Origin: Octopus bimaculoides | Lineage: Eukaryota | Length of the DNA stretch: 64,000 nucleotides | Direction: 5' to 3' | Assembly: GCF_001194135.2 (NCBI RefSeq) | Contig: NC_068983.1 | Location: forward strand, 60,576,386 to 60,640,385 | Part shown: positions 25,266-58,069 of the stretch, one piece after another | Layout: each line of letters starts with the position of its first letter | Position numbering within the stretch: the first letter of the stretch is position 1 | Position numbers and translations under genes: made by a program | The notes under the pieces: generated by a model | Told to the model about the DNA's origin: nothing | Database searches by the model: none | Seen by the model: only the letters and a program-made list of their open reading frames with translations

Positions 25266-25328
25266 CTAGAACTTAAATTCTTTATATTTCTTGGCTTTTC
25301 CACTGTCTTGCTGCTGTCGTTTCCGTTT
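25266..25328 (-). CDS. SF3B2: SF3B2 last coding exon c21 (KRKRQQQDSGKAKKYKEFKF*)
   Basis: Conserved KKYKEFKF terminus; TAG at 25268-25266. Confidence 0.96.
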   Translation of the reverse strand, partial: KRKRQQQDSGKAKKYKEFKF

Positions 25329-28300
25329 CTAAAAGTAACAAGGAAATTTTTTTTAGTATTTTCAGAATTTTACAAAGAAATCTCAAAAATTACATACATA
25401 TATTGGCAATTTGCAAGTGAACAATCTTAATGTAATTCTAATATTTTCCATCTTATCTTACTATTAGACCTTCTGGGAATTATCCCACTGCTTCAATTAT
25501 TTACCTCCATAAGATTAAAACTATAATCAAAGTACTGTATTTTAACATGTAATAAAGAACTTGTTTTTGTCAAAAATTAGGTTAAAAAAATACGGGAGTT
25601 TTTTTATACATGGATAGTATTATAATCCCTTACAAAACCTTTTTTTTCCAAATTCTAAGCCCCCAAAATTAGGGGGTTCCTTATACATGTTAAAATATGG
25701 TACTTGTGACTTAGAACCAGTCAATCTGAACATAATTTGAAAGCCTGTATGATTTGATCTTGTGGTGGTGCCACAAAAAAGCACCTGTGCTGGTATCACA
25801 TAAAAAGAACATGCATACTGGTGCCACATAAAAAGCATGGTGCTGGTGCCACATAAAAAGCCCCCATGCTGGTTCCATGTAAAAAGCTCCCAGTAGACCC
25901 TGTAAAATGGCTGGCATTAGGAAGGGCATCCAGCTGTAGAAACCTTGTCAAAACAGACAATTGTAGCCTGGTGCAGCTCTCCGGCAAGCCAACTCTGCTC
26001 TAACTGTCCAACCCATGCCAGAATGGAAAACGAATGTTAAATGATGATGATGATGATAAAATTTGACAATTCTAAACTGAATTTTTTCTTCCTTTTAAGA
26101 ATTTTTTTAATTATCGAGAAAATGAAGATGTTGATTCTTACCCTTTGTTTGGCAGCATGTTCAGCAACCATGTCTGTCAAATCTTCCTTTTCTAACTGAG
26201 ACTGTTGTTCACGCATGGTTTGCTCGTACTTGGCTTGCATTGCTGCACTGTCCATATCCAATTCTTCGGGATTCAAAGCAACTTCAATTGCTTCAGTTCC
26301 TCCTTTTTCACCAAATCGTTTTTGAGTCGGCATTCCAGTTACCTAAACAATTTAAAAAGAAACAAAATTAGCGTCGACCGAATAAATGGGAATAATCACA
26401 TCCATATTAAAGTTCTAACAAATACAAGCTCAACACTGCTCCCTGAACAGAGTGTAGTAGTTGTACCCAAGTACACCTTACTGTCAGAGGTAATAGATAA
26501 TTTCTGGTGGAACAAATATTTTACAAATATTAACTCCATTGCAACATAAAACATATATTCAGAAAATTCTATTGTAGCTTCAGCTATCTTTGTGTGGATA
26601 TGATTTAATTTTTCAGTTGAATGAGATGGTCTCTAGGATGTCATATATGTGTTTGACGATTTGAGAGTCTTCAGTCAGTAGAGCACAAGATTCTTAGACA
26701 TTGTGCATCATGACTTAACAATATAATATACTAAAAAAATGTGATTCAAACATTAACTGCAATAAATATTTAACAAAACATTCAGTATTTAAACTGGTCA
26801 TATCCAGCTCAAATATTCTTTCTGTTTCATGATCAAACTGACCAGACCCAACCTCTCACACCTATCCTACAATGCCATTCTAAAAATAAACAATCACATC
26901 ATCAAAATCTTCAAGCTGTGAAATAATACATGATTAATTTAAAACAATACAATTAAATAACTGGTACTCTGTCGGTTATGATAAGGGTTCCAGTTGATCC
27001 AATCAATTAACATGAAATTAACGTGCAGGTGGCTGAGTGCTCCACAAATACAAGTACTCTTAATGAAGTTCTCAGGGAGATTCAGCATGGCACATCGAAT
27101 GCGACAAGGCTGGCCCTTTGAAATACAGGTACAACTCAATTTTGCCAGGTGAATGGACTGGAGCAATGTGAAATAAAGTGTCTTGCTGAAAGATATAACA
27201 CACTGCTGGGTATCGAACTCACAACCTTACAGTCATGAGCAGATACCCCAACCGCAAAGCCATGCACCTTCATGATTAAATAAACATAAAATTTGACTGA
27301 GAAGTCTGAATGCTAAAGAGTTAAGCAAGGTGAGGTTATTTATAACAAACTTTTAGTTTGACATGCATACATTTAATCCTTTCGTTACTGTATTTATTTT
27401 GAGATGCTCTGTGTTTCTTTCAATTAATTTAAATATAACAAAGAATTTAGTAAAATAACTTAGTTATCATTAAGCTAGTGTTAAGAACATAAACTGTGTC
27501 TAAAATTTTGTGGAAGATTTTAATTAAAAACTTATAAAAACAAGACATTTGTACTACAGAGCCAAAGGCAGTTTCAGCAAGATTGGTATCAAAGGGGTTA
27601 AAAATATCTTGGTGACTTTAACCCTTTTGTTACTATATTTCTGTTGGGATGCTCTGTGTTTCTTTCAATTAATTTTAAATATAACAAAGAATTTAGTAAA
27701 ATGAAAACAAGACATTTGTACTACAGAGCCAGAAGTGGTTGGTAACGAAAGGGTTAAAGAGCAGTCCATAGTTGTTGCTATTATGAGAATAATCCTAATA
27801 CTTATACATACAGCAGACATATCATATATGTGAGCTGATCCCATCATATTTGCTCCAACATTTGTTTTCTTCTCTGGCAGAATTGTATAAAGAGCTGGTG
27901 TATCACCACCTTGGTCTATTGCATCTTCTATACGTTTCTTCCTCAGTTCTATCATGTCAGGTGTTTCTACTCCCATCGGAACTGATGTTATTCCACTCGG
28001 TGTAACCAACCTGAAATAAATATAGTGATTAATTACTTGAGATTGTGTTCATTAGTGTTTTATATTTCCATCAATTTTTTTTTTTTTAAACTGGTTTACA
28101 TTCAATGTACAATGCTAGAAAATAACAGAAATATCTACAGATCCAAACCATTATGTGAATTTTAATGGAAGTTTAATTTGCTGCCAAACGCCAAGAACCT
28201 GACTGTAAATTTGGAATACTCCCAATTTTTACTTATGAACTTCATATTATAACAATTGCAAGTTTTAGATTCAATTCTTTTACCAAGCATTCTTGATATC

Positions 28301-31300
28301 TTTTTTTTTTTTTTTTTACTCCCTGACCCAGTTTTNNNNNNNNNNCCAAGCATTCTTGATATCTTTTTTTTTTTTTTTTTACTCCCTGACCCAGTTTTTA
28401 CTGAGCCAGTAACTGCTGACCTCGGATGATTCAAGAACCACTGCTGAATGAAGTTAGCATACTTCTCAGCATTAATCAATAGACTCTACCCAGAAGCCTT
28501 TGGTACTTCAGGTCAGCATTGAGTTACAGCTCTGCCAGTTCTAATCCAACTACACTTGGCAAGGGATGCATTCAATTCTCATCAATCTCAGACTATTAAA
28601 AGGTAACCAAAACAACGTTCTTCTTCATCCCCATGAAAAGAATGTTTTGCAATCTTTTGACTGTGTCTGGAACGGAAACCTCCAAACCTAGTTGCCTATG
28701 TTCCATTAATCTCTGTTCGCTTAGATTGGAAGTTTCCATCAGACTGTGTCCTGTTATGGCACAGCTCTCTTCCTCTCTCCCGCCTTTTGTTTTAATGCAG
28801 ACCCTAATGTACAAACACATTTGAGCTGCCCCTTCTCCTCTTACAAACTATAAAAAAAAAACAAACAACATTTACTAGAGGTAAATTAAGAAACAAGGTA
28901 CATACCCCTCGGCACCAGGGGTTATAAGCCCTGTTGTGTCTAATTCTTCTTCGGAAGATTCTTCTTCAGACTCTTCACATTCTGACTCTGATTCCAATTC
29001 ACCCCAATGAGTCTTATCGATTTCTTCTTCAGAAACTATAGTCTGGTATAATAAAAACAAAAAATTTTTTTTTAATTAACATAGAAATGATTCAAATAAT
29101 CAGATTTCTTTATTTCTTCTCACTTAACCCTAATGTTTAATGCCTGACACTTGAAACACAACAAAAGAGAAAACTTGGATGAACTCTAACGATTCTTTCT
29201 GTTTGACTATCATCACAGGTAGTTGTTGGTAGAAGTATCAACAATTTATATATTAATTACTTGTAACAATTGGACTGCAGCCATGCTGGAGCACTGCTTT
29301 TTAATCACACAGTTACACCTGCATCTAATCAATTCTTCAATGGCTGATTAGCTAAGTAGCTATTTGTGATACAACTTTAATACATATATATCAGAAAAGA
29401 TCATTTTTTTTTACATTCAAAATACTCCTTAACCTTAAAAAATACCATTGATGTTTTCAGCATTTTGATAACTTAGGTATTATAAGGTTAAGGAGATTCA
29501 GTTTTAGCATCAATCCACATGTTGATCATGTGGAAAGAGCATCATCCTAATCATTATCACCATCATTTAACGTCCATTTTCCATGCAGGCAGTTTGAGAG
29601 GGGCTGCAGCAGGCTCCAATTGTCTCTTTTGGCATGGTTTCTGCAGCTGGATACCTTTCCTAACACCAATCACTTTACAGAGTGTATTGGGTGTTTTTTT
29701 TTTTACATAGCCCAAGTACAGGTGCATATTATGTGGCAGCAGCACCAAATGAAGCAACAGAGTAAAATCTCAAATGACCAACACCTTATTTGCTTGGCCA
29801 TTATATACCCATAAAAAATCTATCATGTACATTAAATGATGTCACATGTCACACAATTACAAGAAAGGAGTATAGCTGATAGAATTGACTCAAAGATGGT
29901 ACTTTGTGCTCTGTGAGACAATTTTCTAGTCTAGATATAAAATAAAGAAAAGTAATTTATACTAGACCATAGCCATTTCTGCCACAATAATATATTTAAA
30001 ACATCTATCATATATTAACAGCACCATTAGTAGAGTTACTAAACACTGTATTTGATACTGCACAAAACAAATATAGTCTAATAATAATGAAGTTATTGTA
30101 TACAATGCTCAGGTGCATTACAGCTCATCAGAAAAAGTAACTAAAACTGCATTTAAGAAGTCATTTGTGATACAACTTCTAATAATTATTTTCTAATAAG
30201 CCTATTGGCTATTCATGACACTAGTGCCTGTTTAGACACAAAAATTCTATGTATATCGCTGCTGTTCCCAGCAGTTGAGCATCTACCATTGACAAAGCCA
30301 AGGAAGGCCGAAATCACATGATCTGGTAGTCTCAGTTGTGGTGATGGCAGCTGATTTATCTTTCACTAGTGATATAAACAAGAGTGCTTATAAGCACCAC
30401 AAATCCATATGAGAGATTCACTCATGGTAAAGTATCACAGAATTTTGTGTTCTAATGGTGCATCTATTTTTAAGTGGGGATAAATATTATCTTTTGCTAT
30501 TAATACCACTTCTGTTTCTAATAATTATTATTCGTCATCAAACCCATTTTTCAATGAAATTTTATTTTTATTATTAAAGATTGTATGATTAATTTGGTAT
30601 GGTATTTATAGTACTATCTTAGGAGATTCTGGTTGTCATCAGTGCCAAAGGGTAAGAAATATTTGAATATAAATCAGTCAGAGATTTTTAACAAAAATGC
30701 AAGGAACTTTGAGACAACAGTCGTTTGAGGAACATCAACAAGATATCCTATTTATCTTAACCCATTAGTACCCATGGTCCTTTTTTTTAGGACCAATCCA
30801 TCATATTTCTGCAACACCTGTATTTTTCTGAGATATCTTTAGTTAGTCATCAAGACTGGAATGTCTTTCAAATATTGTAATAAAATTTTTTCTATATATA
30901 TTTAGTATCAGATAGAGTTGTGTAAAAAAAGATTTTTGGTAATAAATCAAATTTAAAAAATTTGGGCATCAATGGGTTTAAATCCCTTTCCTTATCTAAC
31001 ATTTGTAAACAGATTAATAAATGAGAAATGAGAAAATGGACATAATGGTTTAATAAAGGAAACAAAAATACAAGAAACCTGATATTTACCTGGAATTCTC
31101 CACTTTGGGTGCCAAAAACATCACCATACAATGGCTTGCCTGATTCATCAACAGGAGGTTTACCCCAACCTCCAGCATGATAACCGAATGAACATGACTG
31201 TAATTTAAAAAAAAAAAACAATTATAATAGTATTATTCATAAACTGTTTCTCAGTAATGAGATTTACAAAGTATCTCAAAGCTGTTCAAAATCTTATAAT

Positions 31301-33760
31301 AAAACAGAGTTTGTGCGCGCGCATGTTCCTTATGGATTCGAAATCTGGGTTGCCGATTTTGACGCATGAGGTATCAAAAGATTCAGTAATAAAGTATGTT
31401 TTTTGCACAACTCTTTTTTACTATAATATAACTTCATAAACAAGGTCAGGCGCGTATTATTTATAGTAGATAATCTTTTTAAGTGAAGTATGTTTGTCTG
31501 TGTTTTGTTTAGCCCAGAGCTGCCTCTGATGTAGCAGACCCATCGCATAGTTTTGGGTTTTTTTTTTCTTCCTGAAAAACTGTAAATTTGTGTCTTTCTT
31601 TGGATGAAAATGTTTGTTTTAAGAGAGATTTGGCTGCTATTTGTAGTAGCTCAAGTTACCACAGAGACACCTGTGTGTGTGTGTGTGTTTTGTTGTGGTG
31701 AAAAAAAAAAACCCCAACTTTTTCTCAGACTATTTTGCACAATAATTTTTAAAGAAATCTGGACATCTTTCTTCCTGTTGACCATTCAGCTTCAAATTGA
31801 AATTGTTAATTGTTGGAAGTCAAGTTGTTATCGTATAGAGTGGAAGTTCAATTCAAAGTTTTGAACTCATTATCTTGTGGTTAGTAATCTATAACTTTAA
31901 ATTTGAAGCCATTAAGACTTTAAACATTATTTTACTGGATTTAGCCATTCGACTGTCGTCGTGATGGGGTATCACCGTCAAAAATTTAATTGATCATACT
32001 GACCTCAGTGCATATTTCAGTTTGGCATTTATTTTATAGATCTCTGCTTGATGAACTGCTAACTTTGAGACATAGTGGAACACAATACTTCATTTAACAA
32101 CAAGTGTAAATATACACACATATTAGATGCAAGAATGATAGTGCGGTTGAGAAGTTTGTTTCCCAACGTGGTTCCAAATTCAGTCTCCCTCTGCATGATA
32201 CCTTGGGCAAATGTTTTCTACTATAGTCCTAGGTGAACCATAGAATTATGACTGAATTTGGTAGATGGAAACTGCAGCATTGTTCATCAAAAAATGACCA
32301 AAAAACATGTTTATAAAGAAGAGCTGTTTGCTTCGTACACCTCATGTGCCGATTCTGCACATAAGAAAGGAACAAATAATACAATGTGGCTGTAGGTCAT
32401 AACACCCAGGTGTATTGCTAGTATTTAATAAAACAAAGAGGTATAATAATTGTATGGTTTGAAAGTACAGGCCTAATATTCACATAGGTCCAAATGTTAT
32501 TACAGTCAAAGAATGCCCTATCAATGGAAACATATCTGCTTGTTTCAATTTGTCTACAAGAGGTAAGTAACCACTCTTACTTCATAGTTGTCCTTCTGAA
32601 ATCTAATCATTCAAACAACTGTTATGTTATGAAACGAAAAATATTTCTATCAAAGTATGTAAAAGAGTAAAAAGAACTGTTGTGAAAAAACAGATTTTTT
32701 TTCTTTCTTTTTGCATTACACAGTCAAAGAAGAACTTTTGGGAAATTGATGCACAGAAAAAAAAAAACATATGCTCAACTGAACTAACTTCACATGGATG
32801 ATAATTGATGAGATCTATCTAAATTTTCTTACATCAAGTTCAATGTTAGTGAAAAGAAGTTACAAATCTCCTCTTTGACTTACTGCAAATTTATTCTGTT
32901 ACTTAGTCAGAAATTGCAACAGCACACTGAATTATTACTATAGGTAAAATTTAGTATGTTAATTATATTATCTCGTTGCCCCCTAAAGCCTAACATACCT
33001 GACATGCCCAGAGCTCCCTGGGTGTGGGGGAGTACTACCCATATTGAAAACCTCTTTGGTAAAAGAAATAGAATGTCAGTGAAATTGGAAATGTAGTATA
33101 ATTAAGAAGGAAGGTCATCAAAAATTATGAAATCTGTCAGTTGTAAAGTTTGTGAAAGTTTTGTGTTGTTGTTCATGAATAAAGAATTCTAGAAAGCTAA
33201 TCCAGTAGTTCAGGTTAATGAAAGTACTATGAAGTAGGAAAAAAAGAAGTTGTGCATAAATCTCGAAAGGCAACAAAAATTTAATACATACTTCTGGAAT
33301 TGGTGCATTCAAGCCAGGGATCTTGAGATTTGGGTAGGATGGAGGAGGTCCATATCGTTGCATAGCAATCAACCATGGCGGGGGAACTTTCTCTGAATTC
33401 TGAAATAGAAAAAAAAAAAAATGATCAAATACAATCTTCAGAACATTCAGTATTTATGTGGATATATGCACCAGAATATAGTACCAAAGAGCAATGGCTC
33501 AGAACAATAAGAAAATGTGTGTGCGTGTTTCCTCTTGTGTTTGTCCTCCATCACTGCTTCACAACCAGTGTTAGTTTGCTTACATCCTCAAGTTCAGCAA
33601 AAGGAAACTGACAGAAGCACCAGGTTTAAGGAACTTCCCAACCACATGGTTCTGGGTTCAGTCCCCCTGCATGGCACCTTGGGCAAGTGCCTTCTACTAT
33701 AGTCTAGGGCCGACCAAAGCCTTGTGAGTGGATTTGGTAGAAGAAACTGAAAGAAGCCTG

Positions 33761-33796
<36 letters not shown>

Positions 33797-36700
33797 CCAG
33801 ATGGTGGGGGCATGCACAATTGTTGATATATTCCTGGGTCCTTTCAGACGACCCATCAAGTAGAGTCCTGGTCAGTCCTCGTCTCTGTGAGATACCTCCT
33901 CATCTGCCATGACCATGTGGAATGTGGTCAACAACACAAGCCATCAACCCAGCCAGATTCTCAGTGAGGAGAACACAGTAACCAGGGTCTGGCTTGGAAA
34001 ATCTTCAGCCCCCCTGGTCCTCCCTGTATAGTTGTGAGACTTGGACACTTTCCTGGGCCCTTAGGATAAACCTGAACTCCTTCGCCACCAGGGTGCTTTG
34101 CAGGATTATGGGTTACCATTGGTTGGATTTTGTATCCAATCAATCACTCTGCTCAGGGATGTGCCTTGTTACTTGTATAATTTGGAAGCATCAGCTCAAA
34201 CTGCTTGGCCATGTGTGTGTGTGTGTGTGTGTGTGTGACTGTCCCAATACCATTTGACAACTGGTGTTGATGTGTTTATATCCCCTTGACTTAGTGGTTT
34301 GGCAAAATGGCAAAAAAAAAAAGACAATAGAATGAATACCAAGTTTAAAAAAGAAAAACAAAGGTTCAAGGGTTTGCACATTTCAATATTGTTTTCTAGT
34401 CATAAGGTGTGATGATGGGAGAAAGAGTATGATAAAGGTGGGGAAAAGGAGGAAAACAAGGAAGAAGATGGATAAGGACAGAAACGATGAAGAATAAAGC
34501 TTGAAGGCACACTTAATCATTTGACCAACAAGCTGTAATTAATGAGCCAACTTAATCGGAATTGAACTGCAGCTACACAAAAGCTAAAATAATACCCTTG
34601 ATAATGGTACGGTTGGATTGTTACTAACAGGCTCTCGATTACAAAAATAGAAATTGGTTAATAAATATATGTAGGAATTCATAAATAAATACATTATAAT
34701 AACTTACTGGACCAACTGGCATGCCCAGGGCTGTTCTCAGTTCATCAGAGAGATTACCAGGTTTTTTCTCTTTAAGACGTGTCTCAAATTCTTTACCCTG
34801 AAATATCAAGTCATAAGAAGACATATATATAGATAGATAGATAAATAGATAGATAGATAGATAGATAGACAGACAGGTGTACACACACCCAGTACAAAAA
34901 TTATAAATAACATGAAGACAAGGTAAAACAAAAATAAACACAAAATGTGTATTAGTTTTACGCTCAGCAAAAATAAATGGAAAATCTTTTTTGTTTTGAG
35001 CTAATGCTCTTGTAACAGAAAGAAAAAATGAGGAGAGAACAAAAAAAATGGAGAGAAAAAGAATATATTTCAATCAGATGGTCACTTATAGGAAAGTAAG
35101 AAAAGGTTACTTGAGGTGTGAGTAGCAAGGGGGGACAACTGTGAGAGGTGAGTTGAGGTGTAGGTGGTTAGGGGGACATTTGTGAATCTGGCACGTATAT
35201 ATAAAATTACATCTATTGCATTACACTCCAAAAAGATGACCGAGAAGAAAATTTGAGCTACTTCACTGATATCTAAAGTTGGAGACTCATCAGCAATAGA
35301 AGTCATAAAGTACAAATGAATATAGTGTTAAATTATAGATTTATAACATTTTTATACATGTTTCAGTGACTGCTATGTAATGATTATATAAGATTAACCT
35401 TATACAATTTTTACTCAAACATCACTACATCAGAACTTGTTGCATCCTGAGGGGTCATGAGTACAGTGACAAATTTAGTGTATAAGTATGGGTTCATCAG
35501 GGCTCGGTTCTCAGTTAACTCTTATACATCATAGTCTTTCAGGCCATAACAGAGGAATTTAAAACTGGCTGCCCATGGGAACTACTATATGCTGATAACT
35601 TTACTCATTTAGTAGAATCTGTAGCAGAATTGGAAAAGAAATTCACAGTATGGGAGCAAAACCTAGAATCGAAGAGCCTTAAAGTTAATCTAGCTTTTTA
35701 GAGATTACCAGAGCACTTCATTTCTGCATAATATAAAAAAAGGGATTATATTTTTAGAATATGGTTTCAATTGTTGAGCTCTTGGTTTAAAGATGCAAGA
35801 AACAAAACACACACACACACACATAATATTCAATTCAAAGGTACTTGACTTCATTGTATTCCTTGCATGCATGCATTTAGGCAGAAAAAATGTAAAACAC
35901 TTAGAAAAAAAACAGACTTCAACTTCTGATATGATAAAAAATAAATAAAAAAAAAAGAACATGAAACAAATATCAGGATTTACCTCATAATAAAGATCCC
36001 CATGAATGGTCAATTTTGGTTTGGTTTGCCATCGGAAGAAAGCATCATGGAGTTTTTGGTAATCAATATCAATCTTGCCAAGTTTAGGACGCACTTTCTC
36101 ACGCATCTTTGCTTTCAAGGTTTTCTGATCTTCCTGGAAAATACAATCCATAAAAATGCTACATAAAACTGTAGAGAATATAACCCCACAAAAAGTGAAT
36201 ATTAGCAGTCTTGTTACATGTTCTTTTCTATCCATTAATTTCATCTTTAATATTGGTTTTAAATTTTGCCACAGGGCCAGCAGCTTCATGGGTGAGGCTA
36301 AATTGATTATTTCAAATCCCATTGCCCAAATCCCTTGCAAAGCTTTGGTCAGCCTGGGGCTACAGTAGAAGACATTTGCTCAAGGTGCCTTGCAATAGCA
36401 CTGAACCCAAAACCACATGGTTGGGAAGTGAACATAACCATACAACTATGCCTATATATCATCATGAATGCTCTTCCTAATGTCAATCCCATTACAAAGT
36501 GTACTGGGTGCTTTTTATGTGACACCATCACCAGTGATTTTAATGAGACCCCTTCACCACTGCTTTTTATGTGGTGCCATCACCAATGCTTTTTATGTGG
36601 TACCATCACCAGTGCTTTTTATGTGGTGCCATCACCACTGCTTTTTATGTGGTACCATCACCACTGCTTTTTATGTGGTACCATCACCACTGCTTTGTAT

Positions 36701-39700
36701 GTGGTACCATCACCAGTGCCTTTTATATGTAAATAATTTATTAGGCCTACCTTTTCAGCCAAAGCAGCCCTCATTTCCATAATTCCAGTAGCTTTGATAA
36801 AATCTGGTAGTTCAAAAGGTGGCTTTTCAATACCTCTCTTTCCTTGAAGGTATTTACTCTTAAAACACCAATGACGTGGCACTGGAACCGTATTCCTGGT
36901 GGCCTGAAGCAAAACAAAATTAAAATATAATCCAATCACACTATCCTGTTTCATTAAACTCAAATATTTTCACAAAATCTTAAACAATAACATCATTATG
37001 TATTTTTTGTAACTAAAAAAAAAAAATAATAAATTCTTCTTTTCCAGTCTAGAAAGTGGCAAAGAATAAAGTTGCCAATAAATTTCAAGCAAAGAGAACA
37101 AAGAACAACTTACTTTGAGTTGTACAAGCAGTCTTGGATCCTGAGCTGTAGCATCATGCATCTCCACTACATCAGGTCTTGATACAAGCTAGACGAAAAA
37201 AAAAAAAGTAAATACATAAAATGTTATTTCCATTATGAGAAAGAGAGCTTTTAAAACAAAAGTCAAGGATATTGATCAGAATGTTCTGGATATTTCTTTT
37301 GTCTTTCTCCTTCTTTCTACATAAATCCCATCTTCCTGCAAAATGCTCTCCACAATCAGAAATCATTAATATGCTTTAGTGTTTTATATTTATACATGTG
37401 TGTGATCATATGGGTATGCATGTCTATGTGTGACCGTGTTTGTTTGTATCTGCATCTCTCAATTTCTGGTGCGTGTATGTCTGTGTGTGATTGAGTGTGT
37501 CTCATTTTCTGGTGTGTGTGTGTGTGTGTGTGTATCTCATTTTTTGATGTGACCGGTCCTTTCTCCAGCTCATTATATGCTCAACAATACGAACAATTTT
37601 TATTCCCCATACTACAGGCCTGAACATATAACCTCCGTCTAAGCTGATCATGAATTGCATTGACTTCACTAGTCAGGTAAAATTTGGAAGGTGCACGGGC
37701 ACTGCAATTTTTCTAAGGGTACATATGTTTATAAGTTACCAAACATCACAGAAACCTTGTAAACTTACCTGTTTTAATTGTGCAATACTCAAGCGAGTGA
37801 GTTTCTTCAACTTCTTCTTTGACAACTTTGGTGCCTCATCATCAGCCACTAAGTCCTGTTAGAGAAATAATGCAATGTTGCAGTGAATAAACTTGATTCG
37901 TTTGACAATGAAATTATTCAATAACCAAAAGGATAAACACCTAAATAAATTTAACAACGAAATACAATTTAAAAAGAGAAGAAGATCAAACAGAAACATT
38001 CCTGGAGACAAACCACAATAAACAAATAAAATATAAAAACTTCATCGTAAGTGAGAATCACAGAAAATTATCTCAGCAAAACGAGAAGAAATTTACATGC
38101 CAATGCCATGTGTCAGCACCATGTAAAAGCACCCGTGCCTAATACCACATGGAGTGCACCTGTACTGATGCCACATAAAAGCACCCATGCTTAATACCAC
38201 ATGGAGTGCACCTGTACTGATGCCACATGAAAGCATCCATGCCTAATACCACATGGAGTGCACCTGTACTGATGCCGCATGAAAACACCCATGCCTAATA
38301 CCACATGGAATGCACCTGTACTGATGCCACATGAAAGCACCCATGCCTAATACCACATGGAATGCACCTGTACTGATGCCACATGAAAGCCCCTATGCCT
38401 AATACCACATGGAGTGCACCTGTACTGATGCCACATGAAAGCACCCAATACAATTTTAAAGTGGTTGGTGTTAGGAAGAGCATCCAGCCACAGAAACCAT
38501 GCGAAAACAAGATGACTGGTGCCTGGTGCAGCCCTCCAGTTTGCCAGCTATCATCAAACTATCCAACCCATACCAGCAGAGGGAAAACGGACATTAAATG
38601 ATGATCTTCACCTACCACCACCTTATCTCTCCCTCTATGCACCAATGATGATGATGATGCTCCACTTTACCCAAACGATAACCTGAAGTAGCACTGAATC
38701 ACCTCCTAGCCAACCCTTCCCCACTACCCTTATCTCTCAATAACCCCTTGACTCTACTTTTCCCTTTCCTTTCTATTAACCATTTTATCTTTCATGCGGC
38801 ACTTCACCCATCCATGTACCAGGATGTGGTAACAATGCTTTTCCTTCTACTCAACCCTCACATCACCTTCTCTCTCTCTCACTAACTCTTGATACTATCT
38901 GATCCCTAATCCTCCTGTTACTCCCTCCCCTAACACTGTCTCAGTTATTGTCTCCTCGACCACCCTCTTTCAACAATAAACCTAACTCCAATACGATCCG
39001 TCCTGGACCCCAACAAACCAGTGCTGGCTGTACAATCCGTAAAGGGGTTGGTATTAGGAAGGGCATACAAAAACGTGGTCCACCCACCCACCCATTGAAC
39101 TCTCCTATCCATATCAGCATATGGTATGAACATAAAACAACAACAATGCTGCTGCCACCAACAATAAAGTCTGAATGCTATAACGGTGATATTAAAAAAA
39201 ACAAAAAAGGGAGGAAGTAACTCACTTCATCATCGTCTATAATGAGTCCTCGAGCCTTTATAGGAACTTCTTCAGGTTTTTTTTCCTCTTCTCTTCTTTC
39301 TTCTGGTCTTTGGAAATCTTTTGGTTTTTCAGGATCTGCAATCTTCAAAAGAAATAAAAAGCAAATTATGGAAAATAGAGAAATGATAAGAATTATACAA
39401 CTACATTCATTATTCCAGAAATTAAAAAAAAAACCCTTTAGCATTTAAACCAGCCATATCAGACCCAAATATTCTATCTATTGTTATGTTCAAACTGGTG
39501 AAATCCAGCCTCACGCACCTACCCTACAATGTCATTTTAAACATAAACAATCACATCAATCTCTTGAAGCTTTGAGATAATGCAGGATTAATTCAAAACA
39601 ATATGAATAGATAAGCATCACATTTGATAGAGTAATCTGAATACTGAAGAGATAAGTCAATTTTTGATAAAACTCATTAGATAAAGTGACTCAAAACAAT

Positions 39701-41971
39701 TGCAACTCTGACTTCAAATATGTTTGAATATAAAATCAAAGAAGAAAAGATCAGTTTTTCTAGAATTAGGATTAAGCTTACAATATAGAAGATCACTTTG
39801 AAAAGTGATGACTATGAACAAATTACATTGATGTATGTTTGGTTTTCTTTTTTAAAGCAAATGATTCTATTGTCCCACACAACTAAAGACTAAATGTCAT
39901 AGAATTCTAGCCTGAAATATTCCCCAATGAAATCTCACACGAAACAGAAAAAAGATTAATTACTGAAGGAGTTAAATTCATACTACAAAATAATTTTTCA
40001 ACTTCAATATCAGCATTTATAAATAAATACCTAGGGCTGTAATGAGAATAAATGTTGCCCCAACATACACCAATTTAATCAAAGCATACCTAGAAGTCTA
40101 AATAATTTTGCTTTAATTTTATTGCAAATGCTAAACAATTCATCTCCAGCTGTAATTTATTTATAAAATATACTGTAACCTTACAAATATAGTATATTAG
40201 GAAATAAAACCACAACTCTTCCTTCACTGTAAACATTCATGTGATTGTAATTGCTGTAGGCTTTGCAAATGTTGCTCGGAAGTTAATTATTGTCTTCAAA
40301 CATGAAAATATTGTGCAACATAAAACAAAAATTAGTAAAATACTTTTCATATGACTTCCTAAATCCTAATACATACCTTGAAATTCTCAAATATCTTTGC
40401 AAAAACATGGTAGTTAACATCAAAGTGGCCAATATCTAACTGTTCTTGTACATACCTGAAAATAAAATAGAGAGTCAACAAAATGTGTGTGTGTACCCAA
40501 AATTATTGACAACCAATAAAAGTAACAAATGAAATACATTTTTTTAATGAACTATACAATAAGATTAAATGTTTAAGATAGGTTGTTAAGATTATCATTT
40601 CCTGACTATCAATTTCATATCTGAAGTGCATATTGACAATGCTTAGAGAATGTGCCAGGCAACTGTGGAGAAAACAAAACAAGAAACAATACTTCTAGAA
40701 AAATGGCAAATGTTCAACTAGAAAAACATGAAAGAAACACACCCACTCAACACAAGTGTCCCCATCCCCAGGAGTGATTAAATGCTAGGATCAGGTACCT
40801 GCCATCCACATCACTCACTATGACAATCCCCACTAAGCCCTTAACACTGTGCGCCTCTTCCAATGATGATAGCAACTGGGTTGCCTCACCTGTTGAAAGT
40901 CACATGATTGTGTAAAATTTTCAACCAGCAACATTGAGCTGTGAGTGCCATGTGGATTATAGTCTTGCTGGAACATGCTTGCTCACCAACCACCCACCTA
41001 TTTGATGCAGAGTTTGACCACCAATGTTATGCAGATAGTAGCAGTGATCCTGTGAGAAGTGAGGTCACAACCCCCAGGATCATCAGATATGATGGAAATA
41101 TGGTGTGCATCACCTTCTTGGGATCCTTATTTATGAGCCTCATCAACCCATTCAAAGCAGGGTTCCAAACAACCATAATGGTGAAATGTATGTAGGAACA
41201 AATAATATAAACTTGTGTCTACCATAGTTTATGCATATATAATGATTTTGCTTAGTCATAAGGATACTAATAACCTGTTGTTAGAACTGAGGGAGTTCCA
41301 GCAACTCAAAATCCAAAAATTCAATGTTTTCAATGTTGTAAGCAGCCATATGTGGCTATGCATTGTTGGGTAACAATAACACTTGCTTTGACAACTGACC
41401 TCAGTGTTTGGTGCTGGTTTCAGCTTGTTGGCCAGCATTTCAGAGTCATTGCTCATCATCAGTCTGGAGCAGCATGGCCTGCTAGCTGTCAATGCCTATC
41501 TGCCTTTGAAAACATATTTCAAGTGAAATACATTCACTAGGGCTAAATAACAGCAGCATTCTTCCCTTTCATGGGACTGTCCCATTAAGTTGACAACATA
41601 CTATCACTTTATCATGCTGCTACTGCATAAATCTCTCTCAGAGAGATTTAGAAATATATTATTTCTATAAACTAAAATTAATTCAACTGAAAATCCAAGA
41701 TTGAATGAAATCTATACTTACTCTATTTCCACACTTCGATCATTTTCATCATCTTTAGCAGGTTTTTTCTTTAAGTCATTTGCATCTTGCATGAATTCTG
41801 GATGTTTCTTCTTATTCTTCTTTTTCTTCTTCTTCTTTCTTGTCCTGTTCTTTAATATGTAAAAAAAAAAGTATATAGAAAAAATGAGATTTTCAAGTAT
41901 TAAACATGAAAAAAGCAATTCAAATCCATGTTAATGTAAATAAAGAAATAAAAATTACAATAGACACATAT

Positions 41972-42012
<41 letters not shown>

Positions 42013-42697
42013 TATGAACACACACCCCATCATATCTACCTACCTACCTACCTAATTGCTGTTGCTGTCATCATCATCATCACTTAACATCTGTATTCCA
42101 TACCAATATGGGCAGCAGGATGGTTCAACAGGAACTGGCAAGTCAGAAGACTGCACCAAGCTCTACTGTCTGTTTTTGCATGATTTGTATAGCTGGATGC
42201 CCTTCCTAATGCCAACCACTTTACAGAGTGTACTGGCTGCCTTTTACATGGTGCCAGCAGCAATGAAGTCACTAAGTAACTTGCAAGATGTGACCCTTCA
42301 ACTGATGGGAATAGTGCTGAGGGACAGAAAAGGTGTCTTGCATTAAAAGGGAAATATGGCTTTGTCTGTCTGTCTGTCTATATATATATATATATTCTTT
42401 TATTTGCTTCAGTCATTTGACTGCAGCCATGCTGGAACACTGTCTTTAGTCGAACAAATCGACCCCAGGACTTATTCTTTGTAAGCCTAATACTTATTCT
42501 ATCAGTCTCTTTGGCTGAACTGCTAAGTAATGGGGACATAAACACACCAGCATTAGTTAAGCAATAGNNNNNNNNNNNNNNNNNNNNNNNNNNNNNNNNN
42601 NNNNNNNNNNNNNNNNNNNNNNNNNNNNNNNNNNNNNNNNNNNNNNNNNNNNNNNNNNNNNNNNNNNNNNNNNNNNNNNNNNNNNNNNNNNNNNNNN

Positions 42698-42729
<32 letters not shown>

Positions 42730-45583
42730 TTGCAAGTTCCCAATTAGAAATCGCATATTGAAACAGATATTGTTGTACTTCAGGATGGTCCTTTTATTTA
42801 TTTATTTTTTTTGCCAAATAAACGCACACACATATTTTTTTTCTTTGCTCATTTATTACTGTTATTTTATCATTTTAACACCTGGCCATTGAATGGACTA
42901 AGTGGAGCAAGAACACACACGGAAACGAAGAGTGTTGCTGAAGAGGTCGCAGATGTGTGACGAAAGATAAAGATGAGAGGAGTGATGAGGTACCAGCCTT
43001 AGCTGTAAGGTACAACTCTACTTTCAGAACATCTTCCTGACCATTTGAGAATATACATTTCCCAGTGCTTGTTATTCCTAAGCATGTGCCACATGCAAAA
43101 CCTGTTTTCTGTTTTCATCTGCCTCCTTGCATTTTTTAATTATTTATTAAGCTGCATATGACTATTTTGGATTATATATATGCACCATTCAAGCATGGCT
43201 GACGCCAGTGTCACCTGACTGGCACCCATGCCAGTGGCATGTAAAAAGCACCATTCAAGTGTGACCAATGCCAACGCCACCTGACTGGCACCCATGCTGG
43301 TGGCACATACAAAGCACCATTCGAGCATGGCTGATGCCAGTACCGCCTGACTGGCTCCTGTGCCAGTGGCACGTAAAAAGCACCCACTACACTCTCAGAG
43401 TGGTTGGCATTAGGAAGGGCATCCAGCTATAGAAACTTTGCTAAATCAGACTGGAGTCTGGTGCAGCCTCCTGGCTTGCCAGTCCTCAGTCAAACTGTCC
43501 AACTTATGCCAGCATGGAAAGTGGATGTTAAACAATGATGATGATGACAATCTACACAAAATCTACCATGTGCAATACTCAATCAAGCATTAGCTGTAGA
43601 TTTCGACATATATTGTCAAATATAAGTTTAGAAGCATAGGACTAACCTCTTTTGCCTTTTCTTGACTTTTCATATCGTCATCTTCCTCATCAGCATCATT
43701 TAGAGTTGCACTTGTAATAGATATACTTGTAACTTCCTCATCATCCTCATCGTCAGCATCAGCTATTCTGACTTGATTTTCTGGTGCTTCTGAAAATAAA
43801 GATGTTCCAAAGATATCAGAAACTATTTTTCATTAATCACTTAAGCTTTGATCATGAGATATGTTGTAGCACGTTTTATTTTGCCCTAATAATAAGATAA
43901 ATCACAAAAGAATCCTGTTTTTTAACAGGTTATGTGGAAGGAATCTGGGTTAGAGGGAGACCCAGGAAGACATGGGATGAGGTGGTGAAGCATGACCTTT
44001 GAACGTTGGGCCTCACAGAGGCAATGACAAAAGACCGACACTTCTGGAGGTATGCTGTGACTGAGAGGACCCGGCAAATAAAGTGAGTTCACAGCTGTAA
44101 CCTACACCAGTGTTACATAACCAGCCCACTCAAAAGTACCTTGGATCGTAGGGCGACATGCCATGGTTGAGGAGACCTATTGAGTCAAGAACATCAACAT
44201 CAAATCAAATGGAAATTGTAGTTGTGACCCCCGTGCCAGTAACACGCAAAAAGCACCATCTGAACGTGGCCGATGCCAGTGCCGCTTTGACTGGCTTCCG
44301 TGCTGGTGGCATGTAAATATATCCACTACACTCTTGGAGTGGTTGGCATTAGGAAGGGCATCCAGCTGTAGAAACACTTCCAGATCAGATTGGGGCCTGG
44401 TGCAGCCTCCTGGCTTCCCAGACCCCAGTCAAACTATCCAACCCATGCCAGCATGGAAAACAGACGTTAAACGATGATGATGATGATGATGCATTTAGTT
44501 GCCAACGCAATCTCTTATATTAACAAATCAAAAAGAATATTACAATTATTATTAGCAACTTTTGACACAGAAAGGTGGCAATAAACATTTCTATCAGAGA
44601 ATTATTGATATCCAACTTCCAATTAAAAGATATGAAATCGATCAATAGACAAACAGATTTCATCTAAAATCTAATGTTGTAATAATAAACTTAATGGCTT
44701 TCCTGCACATATTACTGGTACACTGAACTGTGATGATAGTATTGAAAACATTCAAAGGTCTTACCAGTTTTATCTATATCTTCTGATACTGCACCTATTT
44801 CCTGAGCACGCACATCCATAAAAGCGAGAATCTTTTCTAAAGCCTGGGGCAATTTTATTTCTTTCTGCTGTCGTTCAGAAGTCTGTCAATATAAAAGGAA
44901 AGAAAGCAAAAAAAAAATAGTAAGAGATTCTTGTATACAATATAGAAGTTCAGAATTTGTTTATTTGTGAGTGTATTCCTTAAGTTTTGTGAAAACACTC
45001 CATTACACACCCCGCAAAAGTATTTTAATCTTTCTTGCATAAAATCCTTCCAGTACAATTCTGGGCTCTGGAACCCAGAAGAGAGAAAAATTCTGTACTT
45101 TATTTTATCAACAGAGAAAAGAAATTTACAACCTTAGATGAAATAAGACAACAGAAAACAAAAAAAGCTTGCATACACACAGACATATATATGAAAAATA
45201 CACAAATACACTTCTAACAGTGAAAGTCCATACACATCCATAAAAAGCACAACACAAAGATACATTCACAGGAAGTGTGCATGATTGTGTTGAGCGAGAT
45301 CGTGCCATTGCTGCTGGACTGGCTCCTGTGCAGGTGGCACGTAAAATACACCATTTTGAACGTGGCCATTGCCAGTACCTCCTGACTGGCCTTCATGCCG
45401 GTGGCACGTAAAAGCACCCACTACACTCTCTGAGTGGTTGGCATTAGGAAGGGCATCCAGCTGTAGAAACTCTGCCAAATCAGATTGGAGCCTGGTGCAG
45501 CCATCTGGTTCGCCAGTCCTCAGTCAAATCGTCCAACCCATGCTAGCATGGAAAGCGGACATTAAACGATGACGATGATGATG

Positions 45584-45615
<32 letters not shown>

Positions 45616-48600
45616 GCAATGCACTCTGGCATTGCCAGGGTGTTATCACCTACAGCCACATTGTATTATTTGTTCCTTTCTTATGCGCAGAATCGGCACA
45701 TGAGGAGTATGAAGCAAACAACTCTTTTTTATAAACATGTTTTTCAGTCATTTTCTGATGAACAACACTGCAGTTGCTGTCTACCCAATTCAGTCACAAG
45801 ATTCAGTTTGAATCCATAAGGAACACACATACACACACACACAAACTCTGTTTTATATATTAAGATATATACATATAATATTTATCCCTATTTAAAAATG
45901 GATGTATTAGAACACAGAATACTGTGATAATTACCATAACAGAACTTCTCACATGGACTTTTGGTGCATAGAAGCACTCTTGTTATATCACTAGCAGGAG
46001 ATAAACCAACTGCCATTGCTACCAGAGAACCAGATTGCATGATTTTGGCCTTGTCAATGGTAGAAGCTCAACAGCTGGAAATAGCAGCAACCCAATCAGT
46101 TACAGGTGTCGCAAATAGCCAGTGGGCTTATTAAAAAATAATTGATAGCAACAAAAGCAGTATTAATACTAAGATGTAATGTTTATCCCCACTTAAAAAT
46201 AGATGCTGTGTTAGAAGACAGAATAATGGAATAGTTACCAAGAGAGAACAGTTATTTCATTTCAATATTTGTTTATTAATAGGCATATTTCTATTGCGCA
46301 GGACTGAGATCAGATCTGCAGCTCCATTCCAATAATATTTTGTGTAGTAATATATTTAAGTTATGAGACCCAAATGACACATGGCTCTAATTGAATCGTT
46401 GGTATATGTTGTGCGTGAGAGGGAGAGTGTTCATCATCATCATTTAACGCCCGTTGTCCATGCTGGCATGGATTGGACGGTTTGACTTGGCTGGCACGCT
46501 GGAAAGTTGCACCAGGCTCCAGTCTGATTTGACATGGTTTTCTATGGCTGGATGCCCTTTCTAACACCAACCACACCGAGAGAGTAATGGGTGCTTTTTA
46601 CGTGCCACTGGTACAGGTGCCATTTGCATGACACCAGTATCTGTCACGACTGCAATTCTGCTCGGCTTGATGGGTCTTCTTCTCAAGTACGACATAATGC
46701 CAAAGGTCTTGGTCATTGCTTCCGTGAGGCCCGACAGTAGAAAGGAACTCGGCCACTTTGCTCCCATGGGGCCCAACACTCAAAAAGAACTCAGCCACTT
46801 GCCTCCGTGAAGCCCAACACTCAAAAGGAACTCAACCACTTGCCTCTGTGAGGCCCAACACTCAAAAGGAACTCAGCCACTTGCCTCCCTGAGGCCCAAC
46901 ATTCAAAAGGAACTTGAAAGTGGAAATTTCAGACTTACCTGAGATTTTGAATCTATTGCTGTCGTAGTNNNNNNNNNNNNNNNNNNNNNNNNNNNNNNNN
47001 NNNNNNNNNNNNNNNNNNNNNNNNNNNNNNNNNNNNNNNNNNNNNNNNNNNNNNNNNNNNNNNNNNNNNNNNNNNNNNNNNNNNNNNNNNNNNNNNNNNN
47101 NNNNNNNNNNNNNNNNNNNNNNNNNNNNNNNNNNNNNNNNNNNNNNNNNNNNNNNNNNNNNNNNNNNNNNNNNNNNNNNNNNNNNNNNNNNNNNNNNNNN
47201 NNNNNNNNNNNNNNNNNNNNNNNNNNNNNNNNNNNNNNNNNNNNNNNNNNNNNNNNNNNNNNNNNNNNNNNNNNNNNNNNNNNNNNNNNNNNNNNNNNNN
47301 NNNNNNNNNNNNNNNNNNNNNNNNNNNNNNNNNNNNNNGGGGAGGAATACTCTGAAGAGAAGGGGGAGGAGGTGGTGGTGGTGCCATGCTCTGTGGAGGA
47401 CCTGGTGGCTGCAATCCTGACGTTGGTGGTGGTGGTGGAGGCGGTGGCGGAGGTGGACCACTAGCCTGGGTCACAAACTGTGGAGGGGGGAGCTGATTAT
47501 CTGAACTTTGAGGGGGTGGTGGGGGTGGAATAGGCATCATTTGAGCTGCAAGAGACAAAATCAGGTATTTTATTAGTTATTATAGTAATATATTAACATT
47601 TACATGTATTAATATTTAAAATAATAATTTCTTATGCATTGGTGCCACATGAAAAGCACTCCTGCCAGTGCCAGGTATAAAGCACCCATGCTAGTGTGAC
47701 ATGTAAGGCACTTGTGCCATTGCAATACATAAAGCACTTGTGCTGGTGCCGTGTATAGAGTACCTGTGCAGGTGTCGCGTTATTTTATCTTTTAAATGAT
47801 ATCAATTCAAAGACATGAACAACTAAATCAAAACAGCAAAACATTGAATTAATGAAGAGATGGTCACCTGATTGCATTTGGTGATGCATAAACTTTTGTT
47901 GTTCTTCTTTCTGTGCAGCCTCTTGTTGTTGTTGCATGATAGCCAGTTGTTGTTGGCGCATCATCTCTGCTTCATCTGCCTGGTGCTGATCTAGAATCAT
48001 CTGTTGGGAAACAAAATGAAAAAAAAGAAAAAAAAACCATTAACAAAGCAAATAAATTTCTCACCAGAGACTAACATGAACACACTGTGAAGTGGTTTAA
48101 CCCTTTCGATACCAACCCGGCTGAAACCACCTCTGGATCTGTAGTGCAAATGTCTTGTTTTCAAAAGTTCTGAATTAAAATCTTCCACCAAGCCTTAATC
48201 ACAATTTATGCTCTTAACACTAGCTTAATGATAACGAAGTTATTTTACTAAATTCTTTGTTATATTTAAAATTAATTGAAAGAATCACAGAGCATCTCAA
48301 CAGAAATATGGTAACAAAAGGGTTAATGGATATATAAGACACCACATGAAGCAACACTTGAATATAAATAGAACACAAAAATATACTAGAAGTGCAAGTA
48401 TTCAAATTTAAACCAATAGCATGATACATTAATGTACTCATATCCAATTTTAAATATTATCATAAATCTCTTTAGTACCACCTTGATAATGCTTGTCCAT
48501 GAGGGGCCCTGTCCTGTCGACCTTCTCTCCCAACCCACATTTCATTCCCTAATATCCAAACAGCACTGGTGCTAGTGTCATATAAGAGCACTGAGTACAT

Positions 48601-51600
48601 TCTGTAAAGTGGTTGGCATTAGGAAGGGTATTATCAAGCCATAGAAACCATGCCGAAGCAAACAAGTAGAGCCTGGTGTGGCTCCTGGCTTTTGCCAGCT
48701 CCTGCCAAACTGTCCAACCTGTGCCAGCATGGAAAACAGACAGCAAATGATGATTTCTAGCTTCTCACTTCAAAGGGAAACTTCATTCTTTAATTTCTTT
48801 CTATTTGCTTTTTTGCTTCTGAGTCTCCTTGCCACTCCCTATCAAACCAGACCAAGGTCTACATTCCTCACTTGCAAAAGTTTCAGTATTTACAATTATC
48901 TACCATTCTCATTTTGTGTTAAGTAAAAAGTCCATCTTTCAATAATCCTTAATAGTCTTCATCTCTCTTCACATTTTGTACTCATTCATAACTTCTGTAT
49001 TTCTATTAATATTCCCATTCTGGTGTCTCCCACATGACCATTGCAGACACCAACCACAACACATATAACTGCCATCAATTCTTAAAGGTTTCATAAAACC
49101 AATTCTTTTGACTTTTACACTTCCTACTAAGAATAAAGCACAAAATAGAGATGCTGATATCAAACTTAAGCAGAGCAGAGGTGCCTTTCTTGTGGAGGTT
49201 TATGGATCATGGGATGAAGAATTCTCATAGTTACCCTTTGTTGTTTTATTAGCATCTGTTGCTGTTTTTCAGCCTCTAATAATTGCTGCTGCTGTTGAAC
49301 TTTCTCCATCAATTGAAGGTATTCTCCTCCAGCAGCAGAAGCAGCAGGTGATGCATTTGGGCCAGAGGGTGGAGGCGGTGGAGGTTGTGGTAATGGTGGT
49401 TGTGGTGGTGCTTGCTGGGACATGACAGCTGCTACAGCTGCTGCTGCTGCTGCAGCTTGCTGCTGATGCTGTTGAAGGGCCAACATCTGTTGCTGGAGAA
49501 CAACTTTTTGTTGAAGTTCTTCGTCCATTTCAGAAGGACCAGCCTGAAGAAAAAAAAAAGAAAAGAAAAGAAAATGTCATGAAATTAATGATTAGAAATA
49601 AAAATACTAATTGCTAATACAGACATTTTGTTATTTTAAAATAATAGAAATGCTTAACAAGCTGGGAAATATTTCATCTGAAAACAAATGTTGAAACAAA
49701 AATGTATTAATTATTGTTATTCATTTGTTTATATTTGGTTACAGGTTCCAGTCTTTTGTCACCTTGACATCTTCCACTTTTGGTTTCCAGCATAAATTCT
49801 TGCATTCTTTCACCTGTTTTATTCCTTCAACTGCAGTTATGGTAGGGCACTGCTATTAATAGTTTCAACTGCTACATTGATCTTCTCCATCACTCTTCCC
49901 GCTACAGCACAACTCCTGCATATTTCTCACTCTCTACCCTTACCATTCACACTCCCTGGAACCAATTCCATTTTTTTTCCACAAACTCTCAGTATCATCC
50001 CTTACTTCCTTAATTTCTCCTATCCTTCCGCTATACAACCTTCATTTTGCAAATGGTTCCCTTCCCCTTATTACCTCTCCCTTCCTCCCTCCCACCTCAT
50101 GTACCTGACTTCACTCCTAACAATTTGCACCTCTTTCATGTATCACCCCACCCCACACCATCTCTGCAGCCACCTCCAACAAATATTCATAAATGACCAC
50201 ACCCCCACCCACTCTATTTCCCTCTATCCATCTTCTACTTGCCTCTCACACTCCCACAAACTTGCTCACCCACCCATACCACTTCCCTTTCATTCACCTT
50301 CTCGCAACTTGAAGATATGCTCAGATACATCTTCACCCCCCATTCTCTTTTCTCTTCTAGCTGGGGTAGGCAAGTATCTCCCCTACATCAAGACACTTGT
50401 TCCTCTCCCTCTATTATTTGTTATATTTAAAATTAATTGAAAGAAACACAGAGCATCTCAACAGAAATACAGTCACGAAAGGGTTAAAGGTAAAGAAAAA
50501 AAGACTCATTGGATAATGCAGACATACTTCTAAGTAGCTATGTTATGGCTAGAATAACTTTAATCATAGATCTGCTCAATCACAGATGATCTGGGGCTAA
50601 ACAAGGAATCAGGTTTTATAAATGGCACATACAGAAGTAGTAAAAATAAATTCAAGAGGAAAATCTCAGATAAACAAATGGAGAATAGACTTCATATTGT
50701 AAATACCGAATTTCATGATCCACATAAAAATTAGACAAAGCTAAGATAAATTGATATTTTTTAAACATATTTATTCCAGTGTTGAAAACACGCATGTGGG
50801 CAGACATGGAAAAGAAAACATGTAACAAAATTGTTAGAATGGGAGGAGTGACATGAGCTACAAAAGCTATAAATTTGAAACCTTAAATGTTAACATTGTA
50901 TTCACTAGTCTGAGTGGCTGTGTGGTAAGTAGCTTGCCTACCAACCACATGGTTCTGGGTTCAGTCCCACTGCATGGCACCTTGGGCAAGTGTCTTCTAC
51001 TATAGCCTCGGGCCAACCTTGTGAGTGGATTTGGTAGACAGAAACTGAAAGAAGCCAGTCATATATGTGTGTGTGTGTGTGTGTGTGTATGTTTGTGTTT
51101 GTCCCCCCCCAACATCGCTTGACAACGATGTTGGTGTGTTTATGTCCCCATAACTTAGTGGTTCGGCAAAAGAGACTGATAGAATAAGTACTAGGCTTCC
51201 AAAGAATAAGTCCTAGGGTCAATTTGCTCAACTAAAGGCGGTGCTCCAGCATAGCCGCAGTCAAATGACTGAAACAAGTAAAAGAGTAAAGAGTAGTCTG
51301 TAGCAACAGCTATAAATTTAACTCAGAGAAGTTAAGTTTCTTCATTGTCCCAAAAATCACCTTGGTAATGCTTGTCCATGAGGAGTGCTGGTACCACATA
51401 CAAAAGCACTGGTGATGGTGTTATGTTAAAAGCATTGGTAATGGTGCCACATAAAAAGCACTGGTGACAATACCCAGTAAATAACACCCAGTACACTCTG
51501 TAAAGTGGTTGGCATTAGGAGGGGCATCCATGCCAAAACAGACAATGGAGCTTGGTGCAGCTGTCAAACCGTCCAGCCCATGCCTGCATGGAAAATGAAC

Positions 51601-55680: not shown

Positions 55681-56310
55681 ACTGGATTATAAGGTCGTAA
55701 TAATGTCAATTATTTCATTTTATACAAAAGTTTGTAAATCGTTCAATGTTTCTAACTTTAATTCTAAAAATTATAACTATAAAATGATAACATTCGTTTT
55801 GTTATATAATTCAAAATTATATATATGCAAATATCGACTGCATGAAGGAATATTCTTATTTAATAAAAATATACGTTATATATTTCCTAAAACCAAAATC
55901 TTGTAAATTTCTTACGTTTATAAGGCCTTTATCCGAAAGAAGTCCAAAGTGCAACAAATATTCCTTAATTATTGACAAAATATCTAAATAACGACAGTAA
56001 TTAAAGATCGTGCCGTAAATGATAATTTAAGACCAAAGGAGTTATCTCCCTTCTTCATTGGTTACTCTTAGGTCAACATTCCCAAAGCTTCGAATTGAGA
56101 GCCTTCAAACCCAGACTATGTGTTTTGTATGCATGTCATTGCATTATCCGATGTATCTCTTCTTTGTTCAAGATTATAAACTGTGATTTGAGGGTCATCG
56201 TTTTTTTTTCATTGTTGTTTACTGCCAGGCCATCTCTGATCTGGTTGGCTTTTGATCAAAGCAATTCAACTGTCATTCCCACCACCACGTCATTCTTTTT
56301 GGTTTTTAAG

Positions 56311-57505: not shown

Positions 57506-58069
57506 ACACATTTGTATGCATTAAAAAATTCACTACATGACATTACCAACTTGCTTTGAGTTGCTGAAGGAGCAAATAAACAAGGGAAATACTGAGTCAA
57601 TATGATGAGGTAGAACCAAGCATGTCTTGTGTCTGTATGTGCATTGGTCATTCGGTGGTGTCTGTTTATGTTCTGCTACTGTGTTGGGTCGTTCATGCTG
57701 AATATGTGGTTCTATGTTGGCTGCTTGACTGGTGCAAGTTACTTGATAATTCGCCTGGTGATGGCTATCTCCACCATCCCTTGACAGATTGCTGTATTTA
57801 TAATGGTCATGATAGCTAGAAGGATAGACATACCAAGGAGTAATTTCTACCTATGTAAGTTGCCTCCTGTCCACTTGAACCTTAAATGACATGGCTCAGG
57901 TTGTAGGTCAAAGGGAAATCCATCCATTACTTTTTGACAGGACAAAGAAATTTCTTTCATGCCTGTTTGGCCAGTGGTGGATCAGATGAGCAAGAATCCT
58001 TAGATTTGGTTTCGAATCTCAGCTCAGAAAAAGGAAGTGTTAGTTTTTACACTAACCCACTTCTAACAC

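Follow-up and report, generated by a model that had tools for sequence, protein, structure and literature searches.

A serine codon at the position of the PRMT9-methylated arginine in an otherwise ordinary SF3B2 gene

The 64-kb stretch of DNA analysed in this work (hereafter, the window) carries a gene for the splicing factor SF3B2 (SAP145) in which Ser takes the place of human Arg508. As the preliminary description had stated, Arg508 is symmetrically dimethylated by PRMT9, with a bearing on the binding of SMN and on splicing; it is the single site at which PRMT9 places this mark (PMC10984984; PMC10202292). Judging from its sequence, the gene is intact and strongly constrained and, apart from the PRMT9 acceptor residue, is an ordinary ortholog by every test that we applied. 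We lean towards the view that the Arg-to-Ser change is a real germline allele and not an error. The observation rests on one base of a gapped draft assembly, and the evidence on both sides is given below.

The AGT codon, originally reported at positions 36856–36858 as part of the motif WCFK-S-KYLQG, was confirmed by direct reading of the minus strand (36858..36856), where the context CAT TGG TGT TTT AAG AGT AAA TAC CTT CAA GGA translates as HWCFK-S-KYLQG. The codon lies 46 nt into a 153-nt exon (36903–36751, minus strand) that has canonical splice signals at both ends (acceptor AG, donor GT) and encodes ATRNTVPVPRHWCFKSKYLQGKRGIEKPPFELPDFIKATGIMEMRAALAEK, the first part of the DUF382 domain. 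The alignment with the human SF3B2 chain from the PDB (5z56_2; E 5e-141, residues 468–689) is gapless and pairs residue 1 of the query with residue 468; the Ser, which is residue 41 of the core, falls exactly on Arg508, in agreement with the original assignment. Likewise, the claim that editing could not restore Arg at this codon holds, as AGU contains a single A and inosine in its place gives GGU (Gly). A 26-bp minisatellite (36508–36726; 8.4 copies, about 88% matches, with periods of 52 and 78 also scored) starts 25 nt downstream of the donor site of this exon.

The SF3B2 gene body occupies positions 25266..44882 of the minus strand and was modelled as 16 exons that form a 651-aa open frame ending in TAG, which is its sole stop codon. 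Exons 1–8 are located at 44882–44765, 43789–43647, 41849–41722, 40455–40377, 39342–39226, 37855–37769, 37188–37114 and 36903–36751, the last of these being the exon with the AGT codon, and exons 9–16 at 36133–35984, 34797–34708, 33399–33292, 31197–31090, 29042–28906, 28010–27812, 26342–26142 and 25328–25266, with AG/GT at every splice site. Additional upstream exons for the N-terminal part of the protein (47339..49543, minus strand) were recognized by tblastn with the N-termini of two homologs (Haliotis P0251, and P0121), by open frames and by flanking splice signals. They comprise a Gln-rich exon at about 49543–49235 that contains MDEELQQKV..., a second exon at about 48000–47868 and a Pro-rich exon that starts at about 47548. 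The borders of these three exons are approximate and the true start may be further upstream. The Pro-rich exon is truncated by the N-gap at 46969–47338, so the full protein is unreadable from the assembly.

The identity of the gene, which had been proposed from the letters alone, is well supported by domain and homology searches. The product matches DUF382 (PF04037) with 199.1 bits (E 3e-59) over profile positions 2–127 of 127, directly followed by the PSP domain (PF04046; 78.2 bits, profile positions 1–46 of 46, core residues 138–188). Homologs of the 427-aa core number 4599, and the best named ones are all 'splicing factor 3B subunit 2'; identity over this core is 72% to human SF3B2 and 84% to that of Haliotis asinina. 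Comparison of the gene with its two nearest transcripts gave a pN of 0.10 against a saturated pS of 0.77–0.88, that is, a pN/pS of about 0.12. The spliced gene structure and this ratio speak against a pseudogene or a retrocopy.

The rest of the window is typified by a dispersed SINE-like repeat of about 150–380 bp, which is present in both orientations in at least 36 segments (up to 24 pairwise matches per copy; e.g. 3227–3441, 6749–7046, 9510–9808, 22360–22563, 25766–26057, 43187–43549, 44248–44490 and 45303–45587) and makes up 13.5% of the window, several SF3B2 introns included. An open reading frame at 56252–57202 (plus strand), interrupted by the N-gap at 56716–56837, looks retrotransposon-like. 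In its first part, a PHD finger scores weakly (26 bits vs. a cut-off of 24); its second part gave no Pfam match and contains the string RLRWFGHVVRM, which we take to be typical of LINE reverse-transcriptase tails. The segment at 58055–58273 (minus strand), presumably a remnant of a mariner-like transposase, also gave no match in Pfam, and an Rfam search of the window revealed no RNA genes. The G+C content of about 36%, the long introns and the share of the SINE-like repeat fit many molluscs.

The same affiliation is indicated by the gene itself, which in a neighbour-joining tree groups with molluscs, outside the three named gastropods. Its nearest named relative is the Haliotis asinina protein XP_067680182.1 (P0251), with 91% identity over DUF382 and PSP, and the nearest sequence overall is a transcript from run SRR14492786 with about 85% protein identity. 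The transcripts of the two closest relatives have AGG (Arg) at the site. The H. asinina protein keeps the Arg as well, although in the form HWSYKRKYL vs. HWCFKRKYL, so the two residues before the Lys-Arg of the motif are not invariant in molluscs. The stop-to-stop open reading frame of the site exon, used as a query together with its intron flanks, found no match whose local identity exceeded 89%, and Ser was absent from the matches; an exact-sequence look-up of this frame returned no record, and blastn of the gene against 95 fetched loci gave exon-level matches only (74–86%).

We found Arg at the site in 119 of 120, 120 of 120 and 113 of 113 homologs among the matches listed in three protein searches, the lone exception being an 'SF3B2-like' protein of the opossum Monodelphis, which has His. 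These searches returned proteins of about 0.5–1.75 times the query length (up to 747 aa for the 427-aa query, 70–176 aa for the 103-aa query and 140–434 aa for the 248-aa query), which put full-length mollusc SF3B2 proteins (860–990 aa) out of reach of the search with the 427-aa core; Haliotis was found via the cluster-representative search only. That search, an exhaustive one over 1.84 billion representatives, yielded 146 sequences that cover the site (131 with Arg, seven with Ser, five with Lys, one each with Gly and Ala, and one misaligned). A tally of 523 distinct motif-bearing SF3B2 proteins gave 497 with Arg, 12 with Ser, six each with Ala and Lys, and one each with His and Gly. At the DNA level, 241 million metagenome records were scanned by exact matching to the conserved context with the site codon left open, which produced 93 matches, every one of them with Arg; the codons were CGC (42), AGG (23), AGA (9), CGA (9), CGT (7) and CGG (3). 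As all six Arg codons are in use, the DNA must have changed again and again without altering the amino acid. The Ser (AGY) version of the conserved context had no matches in the metagenome scan, and open-codon scans of genome contigs and viral contigs returned no matches.

The block around the site had been described as highly conserved, and the alignment bears this out. Conservation among 120 homologs reaches at least 97% in 201 alignment columns, and the window protein differs at just three of these, Arg to Ser, Met to Ile and Ser to Thr, of which the last two are conservative and the first is the sole radical change. The two further changes at conserved columns show a long-separated lineage in which a few such changes have been fixed.

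Outside the animals, the site is more permissive. Organism names are attached to two sequences with Ser, those of the ichthyosporean Sphaerothecum destruens and the amoebozoan Vermistella antarctica, and the remaining Ser-bearers are metagenome sequences; Lys is found in the fungus Coemansia and in the budding-yeast Cus1 of solved spliceosomes (HWQSKKEYL). No sampled animal was found to have Ser at the site. The preliminary description had allowed that substitutions at this position might prove common in invertebrates: residues other than Arg (Ser, Lys, Ala, Gly) do occur in protists and fungi, but none was seen in the sampled invertebrates. The site is thus usually basic, by the sequences surveyed, and Ser is compatible with a working spliceosome in other eukaryotes. 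Nine of the 12 Ser-bearers have Arg at the position of Gly513 (LQRK vs. LQGK), as against one of the 497 Arg-bearers. This Ser508/Arg513 pairing in protists (P0308, P0314, P0338, P0355, P0356 and cluster members, all outside the window) may represent a compensating relocation of the positive charge. The window SF3B2 has no such compensating Arg, its Gly513 equivalent being kept.

How far the single base can be trusted depends first of all on the assembly. Seven N runs (966–1152, 13090–13797, 28336–28345, 42568–42697, 46969–47338, 56716–56837 and 57298–57307) mark the window as a gapped draft scaffold, and a base-call or consensus error in such a short-read draft, with a true codon of AGG or AGA and no biological change, is an explanation that we regard as unlikely. 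In its favour, AGT is one third-position transversion away from the AGG of the relatives, which is what a base error, or for that matter a heterozygous SNP, would give. Arg is otherwise near-invariant in animals, with the one His in Monodelphis, which makes for a low prior for a real fixed change, and a scan for anomalies selects for errors and enriches rare alleles. On the other hand, the site is located in the middle of a gap-free 14-kb stretch (28346–42567), over 5 kb away from the nearest N run; the sequence there is unique and no long homopolymer adjoins the codon. None of the 16 exons in the model has a frameshift or an internal stop, which argues for good local base quality. Repeat-collapse misassembly at the site is ruled out, as the exon does not overlap any dispersed repeat. 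Set against the two further lineage-specific changes at conserved columns, consensus substitution errors are also rare. Because this long branch has fixed those two changes, rough rates suggest that a real substitution is likelier than a consensus error.

If the base is correct, it may still be a private or heterozygous variant, a rare and probably mildly deleterious allele that was picked by the assembler in a species that normally has Arg. High heterozygosity is typical of marine invertebrate genomes, and the change from AGG is a single step. In addition, mouse homozygotes tolerate the loss of the methylatable Arg, so carriers could exist (PMC10984984). Nevertheless, nonsynonymous polymorphism at so constrained a site should be rare, and we give this possibility a modest share of the probability. 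It would be very unlikely for the gene to be a diverging paralog or a young pseudogene, with a canonical Arg-bearing SF3B2 elsewhere in the genome: odd extra copies do exist, since the lone non-Arg animal match, the His protein of Monodelphis, is annotated 'SF3B2-like', but the introns, the canonical splice sites throughout, the intact 651-aa frame, the low pN/pS and a mere three departures in the 201 conserved columns do not fit a copy under relaxed constraint. Mutually exclusive splicing with an alternative, Arg-encoding version of the site exon is a known route by which animals diversify a conserved exon, and nothing further speaks for it; we consider it extremely improbable, and within the window it is effectively refuted by a sensitive tblastn search with both the Ser and the Arg versions of the exon, which found a single copy in the 64 kb, the next-best match having E ≥ 0.37. 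A real germline allele therefore remains our preferred reading, to be taken with the proviso that these estimates overlap, a private variant being also a real allele. The points that support it are the clean codon and exon, the 16 intact exons, the strong purifying selection, the gap-free and non-repetitive site, the tolerance of Ser and Lys that other lineages display, and the viability of mouse R491K homozygotes, which lack the mark and are impaired (PMC10984984). A point against it is that Arg at the Gly513 equivalent, present in most Ser-bearing protist sequences, is missing here.

The consequences of a real change can be gauged from work on mammals. PRMT9 is highly specific for the sequence 505-CFKRKYL-511 (PMC10202292). 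Arg508 is highly methylated in vivo, the mark being near-stoichiometric in mammals, it promotes the binding of SMN and it contacts RNA; its methylation weakens RNA binding by the peptide at the anchoring site (PMC10984984). The mark is absent from mice with a Prmt9 knock-out or an Sf3b2 R491K knock-in; these animals are viable apart from partial postnatal lethality and show defects in splicing and learning; about 1900 splicing events are altered by the loss of the mark (PMC10984984). Among protostomes, prmt9 is kept in annelids (PMC12153100) and the PRMT-9 of Caenorhabditis elegans acts on SFTB-2 (PMC10578352), so the protostome ancestor probably had PRMT9. Digestion with trypsin/Lys-C did not yield the peptide with the methylation site in the C. 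elegans study (PMC10578352). Our search for the distribution of PRMT9 in molluscs, insects and plants found no usable literature.

Assuming that the allele is real, an ancestral AGG or AGA would have become AGT by a single third-position transversion, replacing the equivalent of Arg508 with Ser. With Ser at the acceptor position, the encoded protein cannot receive the symmetric dimethylarginine mark of PRMT9 at its sole known site. The substitution would also remove the guanidinium group and the charge contact, and Ser508 may therefore be closer to the weak-contact, methylated state than the Arg-to-Lys mutant is. Given that the methylated peptide holds anchoring-site RNA less firmly, we propose that the small neutral Ser probably amounts to a constitutive weak-contact state, for which PRMT9 would be dispensable. 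The cost would presumably be the loss of the Tudor-domain interaction of SMN that depends on symmetric dimethylarginine, together with any regulation by PRMT9.

In a broader version of this scenario, an entire clade of molluscs, perhaps the cephalopods, would have Ser at the site as a fixed trait, with the PRMT9–SF3B2 axis naturally dismantled and PRMT9 lost, decaying or redeployed to other substrates; the near-stoichiometric methyl-Arg would have given way to a small neutral residue, which would make the weak contact with the anchoring site permanent. We regard this extension as doubtful. A phospho-switch at the Ser, which has Lys on both sides, is conceivable at most. Speculatively, and going by the genetic code alone, A-to-I editing of the middle A in the flanking Lys codons (AAG at 36859–36861 and AAA at 36853–36855, minus strand) could in principle convert them to the Arg codons AGG and AGA. 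Such editing would be of consequence in a coleoid alone, where it could supply, at the level of RNA, a basic or methylatable residue beside the site.

The interest of the substitution stems from the standing of Arg508 of SF3B2 as the one substrate site of PRMT9 that is firmly established. If confirmed, an animal lineage that does without it would be a natural knock-out of the PRMT9–SF3B2 axis. It would show whether Arg508 has been conserved for its methylation or for its contact with RNA, would test enzyme–substrate co-evolution in the form of PRMT9 loss upon loss of the site, and would point to the introns for which the contact at position −13 is needed. Should the base prove to be an error or a private allele, it has no wider meaning.

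Compared with the SF3B2 (SAP145) proteins of human and mouse, the window protein is clearly orthologous, sharing DUF382 and PSP and the identical flanks HWCFK-x-KYLQGKRGIEKPPFELPDFI, but it has Ser in place of the methyl-acceptor Arg, so that the defining feature of a PRMT9 substrate is missing. All the flanking residues of the motif (C505, F506, K507, K509, Y510 and L511, i.e. CFK-S-KYL) are kept; these flanks are also conserved in lineages without PRMT9, which makes them uninformative on the age of the change. The closest experimental counterparts are the mouse Sf3b2 R491K and human R508K mutants, in which the PRMT9 mark is abolished at the same residue, the mouse allele supporting life with altered splicing (PMC10984984). 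Lys in these mutants, however, retains the positive charge and strengthens binding at non-consensus anchoring sites, whereas the Ser of the window protein is uncharged and its effect on RNA may be the opposite; moreover, the mouse change was engineered, whereas the Ser would be natural.

Two natural systems come near to this condition. Cus1 of Saccharomyces cerevisiae has the same fold and the same position within a working SF3b complex that does without Arg; it has Lys there, remaining basic, in a motif that has diverged around the site (HWQSKKEYLSGR), unlike the Ser of the window protein. To our knowledge, S. cerevisiae has no PRMT9. The SF3B2 proteins of S. destruens, V. antarctica and uncultured protist lineages have, like the window protein, a natural Ser at the equivalent of position 508 within a conserved DUF382, but these are not animals, and most of the Ser-bearers combine it with the Arg513 that the window protein lacks. 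If real and fixed, the substitution described here would thus be a new natural variant, in an animal, of a known protein-modification site, and not a new kind of system.
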